Assembly: GCA_964036045.1 (NCBI GenBank)
Contig: OZ038378.1
Location: forward strand, 7,130,001 to 7,194,000
Direction: 5' to 3'
Source of the DNA: Eutreptiella sp. 'Long Island Sound 2002'
Lineage: Eukaryota > Protista > Euglenida
DNA: 64,000 nt
In this document: one piece after another, positions 30,265-38,200 of the stretch
How positions within the stretch are numbered: position 1 is the stretch's first letter
Layout: each line of letters begins with the position of its first letter
The notes under the pieces: generated by a model
Databases searched by the model: none
What the model saw: the letters and a program-made list of their open reading frames with translations, nothing else
What the model was told of the DNA's origin: nothing
Translations under genes and position numbers: made by a program

Positions 30265-31075
30265 ACTCTTGGGGGTGCAAGAGAGCCAAAGGGTGTTATT
30301 ACAATTATTATTATTGAAATTGCAATCTGACATAGAAAATCTTTTTTCATTTTTTTTTCACTGAAAAATATTGCAACACAAATGTCAATGGGTTTGCTCT
30401 GCTGAAATTTGTGTGTGCTCGAATTCCTTGTACTTGAACGTTGTGTACCGACACAATATCACACAATCATGTCACACATCTGGGCGGGAAGAAAATTGCT
30501 TTGCGGGGGGGGGGGGGTGGCACGGAAACCTATTTGCCCCCCCCCCCCTCCTTTGTCGCCGTGCCAGGAAAAGGGTTTGGGCTGGGGCTGCCCTACCTCC
30601 CATGCTGGGGGGGGGGGGGGGTTCCGACCCCAACATATATGGCTCAAAATGATCCCCACGTCGCGCCGATTATTTTGACTACATGTATGTGGGGGAAAAA
30701 ATTTTCGTGAAAAAACTTTTCCGGGCCAGAATTTGTGTTCGGGCGCCTTTGGTGGCAACATCCGTCCTTACACAAAACAAAGGGCCCGGCACGGAAACCC
30801 ATTTCTGGAACCCCCCCCCCCCTTTCCTCCTTCGCCGGGCGGCCATGCTATCCCCCCCCCGCAAAGCAATTTTCGGGTCGCCTTGACATCAACATCACAC
30901 GTAAGATGCCGAACATGCCACATAGGGTTCATCTTCTATGCGTCAATATGGCTAAACAACCCCTGCCTTCTGAACGTTCCCATGGTGGGGAGAAATCAAC
31001 CTACCATGATAGGGAGAAATCAACCTACCAAGGAGTGGATGTGGTGGAAATGAGCACAAAATGTGTGAAAAGAGG
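30265..31075 (-). repeat. Inverted homolog of 23160-23577, interrupted by a MITE
   Basis: Homology resumes on both sides of 30481-30880. Confidence 0.72.
30481..30880. mobile_element. ~400-bp G/C-run MITE
   Basis: Inverted ends GAAAATTGCTTTGCGGGGGGGGG (30491) and CCCCCCCCCGCAAAGCAATTTTC (~30851-30873). It interrupts the host repeat. Confidence 0.78.
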
Positions 31076-31549
31076 TGGAAATGGAAGAAAATGCCGCATG
31101 GGGGGGGGGGGCAACTACAATTGGTCATGATGCGACCCACCCCCCAGCTATCTGTCTAAACTTGCGGGGGGGGGGGGGGTTGCGCGCGACCCACTACCTC
31201 GCATGCATACCTCAAGGCGGTGTGTGTGTTTGGGGGCATGGGGGTATAGAGTAAGGTTCGGAATTGGTTTCAAAAAAAATAATCAGTTTTTTCCGATCGT
31301 TTTTCAAAAAATAACCGATTGTTCCGATTATGGCCCCTTCAAATAATCAGTTTTTTCCGATGGTGAAACCAGACCGGGTGGTCAGGAGCAGAGGTCGCAG
31401 TGGCATGGGCAGCAACATTGCTTGGCACCGAAGACATAACGATAGTGTTGACTGAATAGTATCCTGCAAACAGATATGGTACACATAGCCAATGAAATAC
31501 CTGATATGCACATATGAGAAATCCACCCTATCATCCACTAATTGATATA

Positions 31550-32223
31550 ACTACTAAACATCCATGATTGCCTTATCTATCCCACATCCTATGTTCCTAA
31601 CAAGGAAATGGAATATGATATACCCTATCCCACATATATCCCATATATAGGGCCAAATAATGCTCCCTTAGGGGTAAAATGCCAGGGTAGGGTTGTGACC
31701 TGCTTCACCCCCCCACTTAAAACGACTGCCACGGGCAGGAAGTACATGCCCAAGAGGAACGTAGCAGTCACAAACAGCAGCAAATCACAGGTTAGCAGAT
31801 TCCCTCCCATAGGGAATCGAACCTACGCAGGCAATGTCGGAGCCGGCCGCACGGCCGCTGAAGTAGCTCCGATCGCTGGGAATCGAACCACCGCCAAAAT
31901 ACAGAAATTGACGGACGGGATCCCGCAGGTCCCGCAATAAGTAGTAGGCGAAATCGCGAGCTGTTGCGCGTAGAGTCTGGTCCCTGCGTGTCGCATGAGG
32001 CATGTGGGGTCCAGCAGGTAAGGGCAGGTAGTTCCTGCCCTCGGCAGTCGTTTTAAGTGGGGGGGTGAAGCAGGTCACAACCCTACCCTGGCATTTTACC
32101 CCTAAGGGAGCATTATTTGGCCCTATATATGGGATATATGTGGGATAGGGTATATCATATTCCATTTCCTTGTTAGGAACATAGGATGTGGGATAGATAA
32201 GGCAATCATGGATGTTTAGTAGT
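31550..32223. mobile_element. Foldback-type insertion inside the hAT 5' region: two ~181-bp inverted arms around a ~310-bp core
   Basis: 31550-31730 is the reverse complement of 32043-32223 (no mismatch seen by eye). The core contains two GGGAATCGAACC motifs (B-box on the minus strand). Confidence 0.88.
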
Positions 32224-32460
32224 AGTAGTAGTAGTTGCAAAAAATAACCGATTGTTCCGATTATTGCCCCCCCTTTTTTTTTGCCTTCTTGTCCACACCC
32301 GGAGGTACCCATCTGCTTGGTTGCATGGGTTATTTCCCACAGTGTGTTTTTTTTCATTTTTGGATCTTTCATTTTCCAACAAAATTTTTATCTCACATAA
32401 AAAGTTCACTAGGATTTTCAGTGATGATGTCATCTTTGCTTATCATCATGCAATCACTGA

Positions 32461-32519
32461 TGACGTCACCACGATGACGTCATCACGGTATCACTGATGA
32501 CGTCATCACGATGACCTCA
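32461..32519. promoter_or_regulatory. Cluster of palindromic TGACGTCA (CRE-like) motifs upstream of the transposase
   Basis: TGACGTCA at 32461, 32475 and 32498; TGACCTCA at 32512; TGATGTCA at 32425. Function is inferred only. Confidence 0.5.
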
Positions 32520-32727
32520 TCACGGTACCATAATTCCAAACACTTTACATCTAATCAGCCGTCAGGGCCAGGCCATCAGAGCCATGCTAGCTTCCACACT
32601 CGGTGGCTTGCCAAACTCACTTATTGGTGGCAGGCCACCAGGGGACGCATGGTCCGACTTTCTAGACACCCAGTCAGGCTACACTACTTGTTGTACTACC
32701 TATTTTTGTCTCCTTGCAGGCAAAATC

Positions 32728-35055
32728 ATGGGAAACCGTGGTGTGAAACCAAAGCCAAAGGCACCTGCAACCAGACTGCCAGCCAAAGGAAAACCGGGGC
32801 GCCCTCGCCGCACTCCACAACACATTGCAGACCCTGCGGGCCTGTGTGATACCTACGATGTTGAAGATATTATTGCAGAACGCATGGCAAAGAACGACAA
32901 AGGCAACAGTGAAAAGCAATGGCTGGTCCATTGGAAGGGTTTTCCTGCCTCCGCCCAAACATGGGAGCCGCTTGAGAATCTCAATGGCTGTGAGGCCTTC
33001 ATCGCGCGGTTCAACGAGGAGCGTGAAGCAAATGAACGGGCTGACCTCGAGAAGCGCAAGAGAACAAAAGATGCGCAGGAAGAAGAGCGCCAGAAGAAGC
33101 AAAAATCAGAGTCTGGGACTGCCTTATTAGATTCTGCCACGTCAGCACCACTGCACGCTCAAACAGGTCGGCGAACTTCGGTTGTCTGGACAGCTTTCAC
33201 AGAAGACGGTGAGGACCCAGGGTTTGCCAGATGTGTCCTGCACAGAGGAAATGGAGTCTGCGGCATTCGAATCAAACACTGCAGTGGCACTACGAATCTG
33301 CGTGCGCATCTGATGGCACATCACAAGGAGTGGTTCATTCAGGAGACGGAAAAAAAGTGTGACATGCAGGACACATTGGTGGCAAATGGCACTGGTGCTA
33401 TCGAATTACAAACAACACCAAAGTGGACTGCGCAGAAGATACATCTGTCCAATAGAAAACTGAGCTACTGGCTGTGTCGCCGGAAGTGTGCACCACACTT
33501 GGTCACTGACGAAGAGTTCAAGGATTTTTGTGATGAAATTTCATGCAGCAAGTATCAGCCCTGTTCTGAGAAGGAGGTACTGAAGCAAACTTTGGAGATG
33601 GTTGCAGCTGGCAGGGTCAACAATCGCAAAATCATCACACAGTTGAAGGAGCAGACAGTGAAGCCGAGCATGGCCTCTGACATTTGGAGTGACAGCGATG
33701 TATCACTGATGGGTACCTTTTTATACTACATTGACGAAGACTGGGAGAACCTGCACGCCATGCTCATTGGCTGTACAGGTTTCACTGGTGAATGGCATAC
33801 TGGCGAAAACATTCGAAAGCAAACCATGGGGGATCTTCTTACTGTTGGACTGACGTTTGAGGACATTCACGCCAAAGTTTCCGATCAAGGAAGTAATATT
33901 AAAAAGGCCTGGGGTGGATTGCCGGGTGGTTACTGCGTCGGTCACACCATCGAACTGGCAGTGAAGGAATACCTGCAAAGTGAAGGAATTTCTGATGTCG
34001 TGCAGAAGGCCAAAGGGATGACGACATATTTTCATAGATCAGGGAACCGTCTTGACCGGCTGGCGGACTTACAGAAACGGTTTGACATGCCTCAAAGGAA
34101 GCCACCACAAACAGGCAACTCCGTTCGATGGCACTACACACATGACTCCATGAATTGGTTCCGGGAGCAGAAAGTGATTGTTCAGAACTATGATATCAAC
34201 TACGGTGCTGAAGCGCGACATGAAGATGGACCCTATGCTGACAGTCACATGGACTACAATGATTGCAAGGTGAATGAGCACTCTGTGGCAGTACTTTATC
34301 CAGCAGCCACAGTGGTGAATGACATTGAAGGTACTCAGTATGTGACAGCATCGCTTGTATTACCCAGTGTGTACATGCTCATCCACAAGGTTCGCAAAGG
34401 TGAGATAGTGTGCAATTGGGACGACTCAATTGTTCAACCACAACAAACTACACCAGAGGTCAGAGCAGCACGTGCAAACCTGCGAACAGCTTTGGAGGAT
34501 CGCTTCATTAAGGCTCTGCCAGACCATGTCTTTGAACAATATAGTATTGCCACACTTCTTGATCTTCGATTGAAGTCCTTCAGTTTTCTTTCACAGGGAC
34601 AGAGGGACACTGCTGTTGAAGCCTTCAGGGCGCAATGGACACAGAAGTGGCAGCCTCAGCATGCTGAACGCCCTCAACCAAAACCTGCAACACAAAAGAA
34701 GACAGGACTGTCAGCTCTTCTTCCGGATGAATTCGAAGAGGCAGCAGGTCCACGTGTTCATGTTCCAGATTTGCAACCTGACGACGAACTGTCAGCATAT
34801 ATGGCACTGCCAGTAGAAGGCATGCAGACGAATGTCATAGAATGGTGGCGTCGACACCGAACTGTTTTTCCCAACCTGAGTAGGATGGCGCGACAGTACC
34901 TTGCGACGCCTGCCACTTCTGCTGGAGTAGAACGGCTCTTCAGCGCAGCTGGTTTGACGTTCGGTGATCTCGCGCACGCTATGAAAGAGGAAACGCTCGG
35001 CTGCAGGTTGCTCGCCGCATACAACTACACGCACGCTTTGTATTGTTATCCTTAA
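32728..35055 (+). CDS. hAT transposase with N-terminal AT-hook and chromodomain, BED zinc finger, DDE domain and hATC dimerisation domain (775 aa from ATG 32728)
   Basis: KPGRPRR; YDVEDIIAER..QWLVHWKGFPASAQTWEPLENL (chromodomain, 32854-33012); SVVWTAF..C..C..SGTTNLRAHLMAHH (BED); MASDIWS (D1); VSDQGSNI (D2); CVGHTIEL (CxxH); RW; WW..FPNLSRMARQYLATPATSAGVERLFSAAG (E). The ATG follows TTTTTGTCTCCTTGCAG. Confidence 0.95.
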   Translation: MGNRGVKPKPKAPATRLPAKGKPGRPRRTPQHIADPAGLCDTYDVEDIIAERMAKNDKGNSEKQWLVHWKGFPASAQTWEPLENLNGCEAFIARFNEEREANERADLEKRKRTKDAQEEERQKKQKSESGTALLDSATSAPLHAQTGRRTSVVWTAFTEDGEDPGFARCVLHRGNGVCGIRIKHCSGTTNLRAHLMAHHKEWFIQETEKKCDMQDTLVANGTGAIELQTTPKWTAQKIHLSNRKLSYWLCRRKCAPHLVTDEEFKDFCDEISCSKYQPCSEKEVLKQTLEMVAAGRVNNRKIITQLKEQTVKPSMASDIWSDSDVSLMGTFLYYIDEDWENLHAMLIGCTGFTGEWHTGENIRKQTMGDLLTVGLTFEDIHAKVSDQGSNIKKAWGGLPGGYCVGHTIELAVKEYLQSEGISDVVQKAKGMTTYFHRSGNRLDRLADLQKRFDMPQRKPPQTGNSVRWHYTHDSMNWFREQKVIVQNYDINYGAEARHEDGPYADSHMDYNDCKVNEHSVAVLYPAATVVNDIEGTQYVTASLVLPSVYMLIHKVRKGEIVCNWDDSIVQPQQTTPEVRAARANLRTALEDRFIKALPDHVFEQYSIATLLDLRLKSFSFLSQGQRDTAVEAFRAQWTQKWQPQHAERPQPKPATQKKTGLSALLPDEFEEAAGPRVHVPDLQPDDELSAYMALPVEGMQTNVIEWWRRHRTVFPNLSRMARQYLATPATSAGVERLFSAAGLTFGDLAHAMKEETLGCRLLAAYNYTHALYCYP

Positions 35056-35097
35056 GCGTGCGTATTTGTTGTTCAGATTCTGATCATTACAATCACC

Positions 35098-35235
35098 ACT
35101 TTTCCCAACCTGAGTAGAAAGGCGCGACAGTACCTTGCGACGCCTGCCACTTCTGCTGGAGTGGAAAGTCTCCTCAGTGCTGCTGCTTTGACGTTCAGTG
35201 ATCTCGTTGTCGTTCAGATTCTGATCATTATAATC
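35098..35235 (+). repeat. Diverged tandem duplicate of the transposase 3' coding end within the 3' UTR
   Basis: TTTTCCCAACCTGAGTAG..GCGCGACAGTACCTTGCGACGCCTGCCACTTCTGCTGGAGT repeats ~34865-34971. TTCAGATTCTGATCATTA occurs twice. Confidence 0.85.
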
Positions 35236-38200
35236 AGGATGATCATGCATCAGGTTCAGGTTCGCGATGGCGGTTGTACGCACTGTTTCATGCTGCAACC
35301 ATCGTCCATGTAACAGTCGTGGTGTCGTACCACACCGGCACTGCTCAGAAGCTGACTTTCAGACTCGTTTTTGCAACCTGTGTTTATTGCGATTTGCCTG
35401 GTGCTCATTAAACCCCGGTGCCTTTAAAAAGAAAAACCACAGTGGTGTGCATCATACGTTTTCGCTTCTTCTGCAGTTCAGCGACAGCTTGCCATTTTTG
35501 ATTCCTTGCTGATTGCACTGGCGGCTCAACTGTGGTGTGCCGCTGCGCGCCGAAATAATCGATTTGATTTCAATGCAGGTAGCAAAATAATCGGTAGATT
35601 GCAATTATTTTGTTTGGCTTGCCAATCATTGCCGATTAATCGATTAATCGCCAAAATCGATTCCAAACCTTAGTATAGAGGTATGTATGCGATTGTAGCG
35701 ATTTCTCGTCTTTGCCAGGAACAAAGTCTCAAGGGTCTTAAAGACCAAAAGCATAGTACCCCCTTCAACTAAGCATGGGACAAAAATTTTGGCGCCGTTG
35801 GCACCATGACCCCCGCACCGCTATCTTGCAAAACTCGGGGGGGGGGGGGGAGCAGGTCATAAAGCGCTCGCAGCAATATTCGGCAGTTCTTCTTCGGGGG
35901 GGCATACAAGGACAGGGCCCGGCCGCCCCCCCCATGTGTGGAAGACGGATGAAAACTTGCGGATCACAAAATATGGGTTTCTACTGTGGCAGACGCCCAA
36001 ATAAACGCACTGCGCACACACTGCGCTTAAGGGCCTCCCCCCATGGCTGGACAGAAAAATCTCACATAACATTTGAATGAAGCAAGAAAATTCCAGTACG
36101 GTGAGTAAACTGACAGCATCACTCAACAGTGGCACAAAACAGGCACAAATAAGAAATAGAAATGGCCCTGACCTGCACAATATGTGCAGACATGTCTGGC
36201 AAACCAAACCTTTCCCAGCTAAATGAATGCAAGAGACAAGTGTAGCCAGTTTTGGCCATGCTTCCACCATTGCATGCAAGAATTCCAGTTTGCATGCTTT
36301 CGGTCGCAATGTTCTGTTTTCCCATTCTGTTCTCCGACGGCAAACGCGGTTCAATCTGCCTTTTCCATACATGGTTGATCTGTTGATGCCAGTAAAAAGG
36401 CAGTGAACACCATTTTCTTCCACAGGATCACATGGCACAAATACATGGATAACATACATTTGGATGTGTTGTTTCAGCACTGCTGACAGATTCCATGAGC
36501 TTCCCAGGGATGGCCACAACCCTGGTATGACGGCAACCATGGCAGCAAATGAGACTGAATGGCCCATGCCCATGGGGAAACTAACAACCAGGATTCTCAT
36601 CCAGAAACCAATCCTGCCAGTTCACACAAACACTATGCACCACCTCGCAGGCACAGAAAACTGCTGCACATGAACAAATTTATCAAGCCAACCATCAACT
36701 GCAGCCAATTAATGGCAAAAAGGTAATTACATACCTGCCAATACATCACCTTTTTTTGGGGGGGGGGGGTCCTGTCATTCCGGGCCACGAACCATTCCCT
36801 GAATTGCTCGAATTCATCCTATGAGGTGACCAAAAACAGCTCTGGCCAGTAGTGAAAGCTGTTGCTCATAAAAGATGGCATCAACAACACACAACAATCT
36901 GCAAATCCAACGTCACGCATCCATCACCACACAACACCATGCATCTGGATACAATCACAAAAAATCCAAGCTGTTGATACATTCCGCAATCGTAGGTGTG
37001 CAAATGCATGGAAAATGGGATTCTGTGAGATCTGCATTTGACAGTATTTGACAATGACAACAAACAAAGACCAACATAGCTGTGTTGGGCACCATCATAT
37101 ATGGATTATGTAGGGAAATCAGGGCGACTCATGGTGCATGCATATGATGTGGGATATTCGATGGGGACGGTGGTGATGGGTGACTATTTCCGTGGCATGT
37201 GTGCACATGCATGTATTTACAGAATAACACAATGTATTTCATACAAAGGCCTGATGCAAATATGAATATACCACAGATGTACCTGACGGGCATCTGTGTG
37301 TTGCACTGGTGAAAAAGAGCAGTTTGCGACAGGATGATTGATAAGGTTAGCATGCCTGGGGAGCACTTCCAGTAGTGATCACCATGAATCAGCCGATTGA
37401 GATGGTTCGCTCCTTTGTTCATTGTGCCCCATCACAGGAATGGCATACAAAAGCATGCTGTCCCAACCATGCCCTGTATTGCAACAGCCACAAAAATCCA
37501 AATTGGTGAAAACATTTCAAGCAGGGCAGAGACCTATTCGGGTCCAAATTGCTGTAATATAGGCGTGTTGCAGTGGGGCGCTTACATGGTGGCGGCAACT
37601 GCAAAGGAAGCGGGAGGGGGAATGCCAAAAAAAAAAAAAAAACTACAGACAAAAAAACCTGGCAGCACCCTTGAGAGGCTTGCAAACCAATGGCAGGGTG
37701 GCTGGGAACTGGCCGCGTCATTGCCTCCTGATTCCATCGAACTTGAGACCAGCTGCTCCTCGTGTAGCATAAATTCAACACAACTTACTTCAAAACACTC
37801 CTACTTGGGCATCACTGAAAAAAATAATAAAGGGGTTATCCAGAAAAAGGATTCAGAGACAACATGCACAACCTTACAAAAATTGGTTTCCAAAGGGTGA
37901 GCAAATGTACTCAAAAAATGGAGCTCCTTGGCAGGGCCTCCCACACAGTCAATCAAACACTGGTTCCACAAAAGCGCAGCAGACACATGTGTCACATGTG
38001 CTATAGCTATAGCTAAACGCCTAACCTGTCTTTGAGCCCTGGAAACCCAGGATGGTATAAAACGCCTCCAAGCAGCTGCCGCAATACCAAAATTTTGCAC
38101 TGCGTATACACTGCATGAGTAGCAAAGCAGACATATGCTGGAAGAAGGAATGGCTTTGAAAACTGGGAGCAAAAGAAAGGGGGGGAACATCATGTAAATT

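Follow-up and report, generated by a model that had tools for sequence, protein, structure and literature searches.

A hAT transposon with a chromodomain-bearing transposase in the euglenid Eutreptiella, and its relatives in microbial eukaryotes

The 64,000-nucleotide stretch of the genome of Eutreptiella sp. 'Long Island Sound 2002' analysed here (contig OZ038378.1, positions 7,130,001 to 7,194,000; hereafter the window) holds, at window positions 31252-35672, a hAT DNA transposon whose 775-residue transposase carries a chromodomain in front of its zinc finger and catalytic core, an arrangement that we term a chromo-hAT. The element is an autonomous cut-and-paste transposon of the hAT superfamily that has been active recently, transposing by the hAT mechanism, and alignments across a deep clade establish the chromodomain as an in-frame, conserved part of the enzyme. 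The best explanation of these observations, to which we give slightly better than even credence, is that this autonomous chromo-hAT is steered by its chromodomain through methylated histone H3, and that the transposase had acquired its chromodomain long before the family came into this genome or diversified there. Chromo-hATs are a barely described kind of element, more widespread and older than the literature suggests.

The element, its transposase and its copies

The features of the element and of its transposase are, in window coordinates:
31244-31251, unstranded: left copy of the target-site duplication (TSD), GTATAGAG, the same as the right copy and single in paralogous empty sites
31252-31264, + strand: 5' terminal inverted repeat (TIR), TAAGGTTCGGAAT, kept in 13 two-ended copies
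31265-31362, + strand: 5' subterminal repeats, 64-bp unit with AATAATC / CCGAT motifs
32728-35055, + strand: transposase gene, 775 aa plus stop codon (open reading frame (ORF), Pfam, homologue alignment)
32854-33018, + strand: chromodomain, aa 43-97, cage residues Y43, W69 and F72 (Pfam PF00385)
32992-33108, + strand: long charged helix, aa 89-127, from chromodomain to linker (secondary structure of the model; charged in homologues too)
33169-33336, + strand: BED-type CCHH zinc finger, aa 148-203, SVVWTAF...C..C...GTTNLRAHLMAHH (family profile)
33463-34737, + strand: RNase-H-like DDE core with all-helical insertion domain (Hermes alignment, Foldseek, invariant columns)
33679-33681, + strand: catalytic D318 (SDIWSD)
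33883-33885, + strand: catalytic D386 (VSDQGSN)
34786-34959, + strand: hAT C-terminal dimerisation domain (hATC), aa 687-744 (Pfam PF05699, E 2.3e-14)
34930-34932, + strand: catalytic E735 (SAGVERLFS), within hATC
35553-35659, + strand: 3' subterminal motifs, AATAATC and CGATTA / TAATCG repeats
35660-35672, - strand: 3' TIR, reverse complement TAAGGTTTGGAAT (family comparison)
35673-35680, unstranded: right copy of the TSD, GTATAGAG, the same as the left copy and single in paralogous empty sites

The element lies within a dispersed, G-run-rich host repeat of ~250-320 bp (~31166-31251 plus 35681-35850, covering 170 bp to the right of the element; 2,241 candidates, copies 90-94% identical). When the left flank, one TSD and the right flank were joined in silico, four other copies of the host repeat (82-93% identical) matched the joined query with no break where the flanks meet, and a single GTATAGAG occupied the element's position in all four. 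Because these paralogous empty sites carry one GTATAGAG, the element boundaries and the target duplication are proven, and the perfect 8-bp TSD described in an earlier reading of the sequence alone (the sequence-only reading) stands, its left and right copies being identical. The 13-bp TIRs given in that reading are likewise present, although they pair at 12 of 13 positions, with one mismatch that is the same across the family. CCGAT and AATAATC motifs recur within ~120 bp of both ends, and the 5' array resumes at 32233-32270, beyond a nested insertion described below; by analogy with other hAT elements, these 5' repeats are the likely transposase-binding sites.

The transposase frame is open from an upstream ATG at 32584 to 35055 (823 aa). 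Full-length homologues begin at a matching MG(K/R), in line with the ATG at 32728, and a splice-acceptor-like ctccttgcag lies 8-17 nt 5' of the latter; on these two grounds the ATG at 32728 is the likely start, and from it the predicted 775-aa ORF runs uninterrupted. The BED - DDE - hATC order proposed for the protein was confirmed by a family profile, alignment with Hermes and Pfam, and is common to sister copies and distant relatives. A Pfam search of the whole window protein did not detect the zinc finger, and its own segment scores 15.8 bits (E 0.015 over the full zf-BED model) against a cut-off of 20.6. However, a profile of the BED region from 12 homologues matches ZBED1 (2ct5; E 3e-7) and ZBED2 (E 6e-6), zf-BED matches 7 of the 12 homologues, and the CCHH pattern is kept in homologues, at the N-terminal position usual for hAT transposases. 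Within the core, D318, D386 and E735 align with residues that we take to be D180, D248 and E572 of Hermes, and the CxxH (C403/H406) and RW (R467-W468) motifs of the superfamily accompany the helical insertion domain; D386, C403, H406 and R467 do not vary among 25 full-length relatives, and D318 and W468 hardly do. The C-terminal domain matches Dimer_Tnp_hAT at 53.4 bits (cut-off 21.4). In the AlphaFold model built from a 25-sequence alignment (mean predicted local distance difference test score 79), the predicted transposase fold matches that of Hermes (Foldseek E 6.5e-17, template-modelling score 0.70 on target).

Compared with the canonical hAT elements Hermes, Ac, hobo and Tol2, with which it shares the 8-bp TSD, short TIRs, subterminal repeats, N-terminal BED finger, DDE RNase-H core, helical insertion domain, CxxH and RW motifs and hATC, the window transposase has an additional N-terminal module of ~130 residues (basic stretch, chromodomain and charged helix) before the BED finger, and its sequence identity to Hermes is only ~15%.

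In the 2.28-Gb genome from which the window comes, 2,835 first-look candidates were found, of which 40 were scored; at least 40 scored copies are 93-98% identical. Both ends are present in 13 of the fetched loci, and 10 of these 13 are flanked by perfect 8-bp TSDs, each different. The usual length is ~3,475 bp, shorter copies being internal deletions; one further copy (L003) has a full open frame and another (L009) a single stop. The chromodomain is kept in every sister copy that covers the N-terminus. The sequence-only reading had called the window copy intact and young. Its ORF, both ends and TSD are indeed intact, but an 870-bp nested repeat splits the 5' subterminal region; the open ORF, the perfect TSD and the closeness of the family speak for youth, but the nested insertion is already present. 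The same genome holds several chromo-hAT lineages, among them a second, older family (protein P0006), 45-47% identical to that of the window, which has a 100% match at one locus (L038, G000:C5:122024093-122028385) and is found at ~25 other places too; its other copies are 64-84% identical to P0006. Still further copies stand at 38-45%.

A domesticated host gene was considered and rejected. The ZBED genes, which are domesticated hAT transposases, share the BED finger, hAT core and hATC, and the nearest clusters in the ESM Atlas include ZBED1 and ZBED6; unlike the window element, however, they are single-copy, lack TIRs and TSDs and are mostly without an intact DDE triad, whereas the element is multi-copy and bounded, with its DDE intact. 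A host gene is excluded because TIRs, TSDs, empty sites and at least 40 scored copies are found.

The chromodomain and the age of the fusion

The N-terminal domain is a canonical chromodomain by sequence (PF00385, E 2.5e-13, 50.2 bits against a cut-off of 25.1) and is nearest to those of CDY/CDYL, Rhino and HP1. In the alignment to CDYL/CDYL2 (match E 1e-9) its cage residues Y43, W69 and F72 fall on Y, W and Y, and the TWEP..ENL motif aligns as well, so that the three aromatic-cage positions and the TWEP motif proposed from the sequence are borne out by Pfam and by this alignment. The model places strands at residues 45-55, 61-69 and 78-81 and a helix from residue 82/89, the three-strand-plus-helix fold of the family, and Foldseek matches the predicted domain to CDYL, CDYL2, Rhino, Oxpecker, Chp1, CBX1 and HP1 (root-mean-square deviation 0.9-2.2 Å, 33-44% identity); many of the matched structures were solved with H3K9me3 or H3K27me3 peptides. 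The likeness to the chromodomains of CDY/CDYL/CDYL2, Rhino, HP1 and Clr4 extends to 37-44% identity over ~55 residues, to the fold and to the cage positions; these are, however, host chromatin proteins with other partner domains, and the window transposase has no chromoshadow domain. The charged helix proposed between the chromodomain and the BED finger appears in the model secondary structure and is charged in homologues also. The AT-hook that completed the earlier description is not supported: the candidate KPGRPRR (aa 22-28) has a GRP core but gave no Pfam match at E <= 0.1 and is not kept in homologues, which have instead K/R-R-T-P a few residues ahead of the chromodomain.

An exhaustive HMMER search of 1.84 billion representatives found 80 proteins at E <= 1e-30, and a chromodomain stands ahead of the hAT core in 30 of the 157 relatives retrieved. 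Most of these relatives come from metagenomes, and among them are full-length proteins 770-830 aa long that are 25-53% identical. A transcript of Pyramimonas sp. CCMP2087 (P0200 / P0048; 29-32% identity) holds chromodomain and hAT core together, so that at least one relative expresses the fused frame as a single mRNA. The plastid of euglenids is usually traced to the prasinophyte lineage that includes Pyramimonas; nothing at 29-32% identity shows a transfer between Pyramimonas and the host. The cage is largely kept (Y/W, W, F/Y) down to 25% identity. In the 63 clade chromodomains compared, W69 hardly varies and TWEP..NL.GCE is conserved; Y predominates at position 43, where W, F, L and H are found at times, and position 72 holds F, Y or W and now and then C or L. 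When the core was placed in a maximum-likelihood tree, chromodomain-bearing sequences occurred in most deep branches; the N-terminus is truncated in the majority of sequences lacking the domain, and a well-supported clade of 16 is wholly without it. This distribution fits an old fusion retained by selection, as far as an unrooted tree with imperfect labels can be read. Two further searches were negative: TIRs were sought in three metagenome contigs encoding relatives, with nothing convincing found, and an ESM Atlas search yielded only generic hAT and ZBED clusters, with Chromo in none of the large clusters.

We regard it as very improbable that the fusion arose by chance in this copy or through faulty gene calling and has no role, whether as a passenger exon or as a domesticated host gene. 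Such an origin would agree with the RNA search, in which no run recorded as RNA was found to hold the element (six runs that do hold it behave like DNA assemblies, with collapsed repeat contigs and joints matching deletion derivatives), and with a ratio of nonsynonymous to synonymous substitution rates (dN/dS) that is only mildly below 1 (0.47-0.71 between L001, L003 and L009, whose frames are open or nearly so), the substitutions in the chromodomain being too few to add to it. But the frame is single and continuous, and the chromodomain recurs in all sister copies that cover the N-terminus, in the second family of the same genome, in relatives down to 25% identity and in the Pyramimonas transcript. 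A chimeric gene call was rejected on the continuous frame and on the presence of the domain in sisters, relatives and this transcript.

The pairing of the two domains has one published precedent. In a survey of fusions between chromatin and transposon domains, Grau-Bove et al. (bioRxiv 10.1101/2021.11.30.470311) record hAT transposases fused to Chromo readers of the CBX/CDY type in the sponge Ephydatia muelleri and tabulate 'Chromo Dimer_Tnp_hAT' models. The sponge models share Chromo and Dimer_Tnp_hAT with the window transposase, and their chromodomains fall in CDY/CDYL and CBX orthogroups, CDY/CDYL being also the nearest to the window's. They are, however, gene models from a domain survey, called taxonomically restricted there and given without TIRs, TSDs or copy structure, whereas the discobid protist studied here has the mobile element in complete form, and a deep clade in microbial eukaryotes goes with it. 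Euglena is not named in the supplementary tables of the survey in the form available. Literature searches pairing chromodomain with DNA-transposon or hAT returned this survey only, and no functional study was found; broader terms were swamped by papers on histone acetyltransferase (HAT), and a search for Euglena hAT elements gave nothing relevant. The earlier statement that the fusion was not known as characterised thus needs qualification: it holds for element structure, clade and function, none of which has been described, but the pairing itself had been catalogued in Ephydatia. New here are the complete chromo-hAT mobile element in this protist and the deep clade at 25-53% identity in microbial eukaryotes, a wide distribution that suggests a long-lived strategy over a one-off and corrects the sponge-restricted impression left by the only published mention. 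It also gives the sparsely studied repeat content of this host a defined DNA transposon family.

Proposed reading of methylated histone H3

In the explanation that we prefer, the aromatic cage would bind the methylated ARK(S/A) lysine of histone H3 (K9 and/or K27), the bound chromodomain would hold the complex of transposase and DNA on silent chromatin rich in repeats, and new copies would thereby land preferentially where harm is small, a logic that would be shared with the integrase chromodomain of chromoviruses and reached by a different enzyme. Reading of methylated H3 is plausible from homology, the intact cage and the predicted fold, and the steering of integration by such a reader is plausible by analogy with chromoviruses. 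Those elements (Ty3/gypsy, e.g. MAGGY and Tf1) likewise join a mobile-element recombinase to a chromodomain, and the MAGGY chromodomain is described as binding H3K9me and directing integration to heterochromatin (cited in bioRxiv 10.1101/2021.11.30.470311). They differ in being reverse-transcribed copy-and-paste elements with a C-terminal integrase chromodomain, so that the likeness is functional, not familial; in the window protein, Pfam and Foldseek found neither reverse transcriptase nor integrase, and its chromodomain is N-terminal.

A methyl-H3 ligand is plausible in the host because of three observations. Euglena H3 has one difference (A28) from human H3.1 in the first 40 residues (PMC2939574); an antibody recognising ARKme3 (K9/K27) stains Euglena nuclei (PMC2939574); and the assembly contains two ORFs that combine Pre-SET with ADD- or PHD-like fingers (L032, G000:C1654:16984-20301; L033, G000:C1042:24648-27938), which are candidate exons of H3K9 methyltransferases of the SUV39/SETDB type.

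Several points weigh against the proposal that the chromodomain steers integration through methylated H3. The Pre-SET ORFs stand on small unplaced contigs and could be contaminants, and a genome search for the chromoshadow domain (PF01393) gave no match, control genomes being likewise silent. Some members of the clade have C or L at the third cage position, and the RNA search gave the negative result described above. Binding, chromatin association and integration targeting are argued from sequence and analogy, and a flank-versus-flank comparison of 30 loci, about half of which have repeats in common, has no genome-wide control and is for that reason silent on targeting. The position of this copy inside a high-copy repeat agrees with the targeting idea, yet in a genome so repetitive such a landing is expected by chance.

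The data are equally compatible with a donor-side or self-regulatory role, in which the chromodomain would read methylated H3 at the donor, reaching the element's own silenced copies for excision or serving self-limitation, while the BED finger and local DNA would set target choice. The evidence for the chromodomain (Pfam, CDYL alignment and fold) applies to this role in the same way; the BED finger is the part with which hAT transposases bind subterminal repeats, and such repeats are present in the element; and silencing is likely for old copies that lie in repeat-rich DNA. The chromoviral integrase precedent, however, concerns target choice (Gao et al. 2008, cited in bioRxiv 10.1101/2021.11.30.470311), and overall we hold a purely donor-side function, with its corollary for target choice, to be unlikely.

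A methylated non-histone partner, a nucleic acid or another transposase subunit, for instance in oligomer assembly, would be a ligand of a different sort, and one that we consider more doubtful still. Some chromodomains bind RNA, DNA or non-histone methyl-lysines, the K/R-R-T-P just ahead of the chromodomain is conserved in the clade, and structure entries show that Hermes acts as an octamer; but in both sequence and fold every one of the nearest matches reads methyl-lysine on histones and has these three cage residues, and even deeply diverged members of the clade keep the cage.

Returning to steering through methylated H3, a broader form of the argument, in which an ancient clade spread across supergroups arose by one early fusion and uses a methyl-lysine reader to steer integration into silent chromatin, is tentative and less probable than the explanation given for the window family. 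If true, it would make the clade the DNA-transposon counterpart of the chromoviruses and a natural, compact, chromatin-mark-guided integrase. Target choice by chromatin mark is well documented for long terminal repeat retrotransposons and not for cut-and-paste transposases; with a complete element, at least one more copy with an open frame (L003) and a host that can be cultured and whose H3 tail, judged by Euglena H3, hardly differs from that of humans, a histone-reader bias of DDE insertion is directly testable.

Other parts of this copy and its surroundings

Three further features lie within the element:
31363-32232, + strand: nested insertion of 870 bp, foreign to the hAT family sequence
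32443-32522, + strand: two 37-bp tandem units with three TGACGTCA palindromes, 200-285 bp 5' of the ATG
35100-35206, + strand: 107-nt degenerate repeat (91%), in the 3' untranslated region, of coding segment 34866-34972

The nested insertion begins 111 bp in from the left end of the element and interrupts the 64-bp subterminal repeats; L003 is without it, and an 83-bp indel relative to L003 follows at 32270-32352. It belongs to a young, high-copy repeat of ~670 bp (~1,900 first-look candidates, scored copies 98-99% identical) and contains an inverted duplication of 202 nt (31550-31751 / 32022-32223), with (TAG)n at its end. It also holds two GGGAATCGAACC motifs (reverse complement GGTTCGATTCCC), which we take to resemble the T-arm box B of tRNAs; ARAGORN found no tRNA in the segment. 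The ~670-bp repeat may be a SINE-like retroposon (SINE, short interspersed nuclear element). In another hAT copy (L008, C1:60144561-60144904) a 91%-identical segment begins at the same element position (113), either as a shared ancestral insertion or as the mark of a hot spot.

The TGACGTCA palindrome is a site of the CRE/bZIP type (cAMP-response element, basic leucine zipper), and the tandem units are a possible promoter element of the transposon. The 107-nt duplicate of hATC-coding sequence is common to all family copies, appearing as a second tblastn match in every locus. Outside the element, another repeat of ~400 bp lies 360 bp further left, at 30480-30885 (6,085 candidates, 88-89% identical).

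Elsewhere in the host genome, a 24-nt query that we take to be the Euglena gracilis spliced-leader (SL) sequence occurs 5,458 times, dispersed on both strands (e.g. C1:29492-29515), against 0 for the reversed control. This count is far above that of a tandem SL-RNA array and suggests many dispersed SL-RNA genes or retroposed SL-carrying RNAs.

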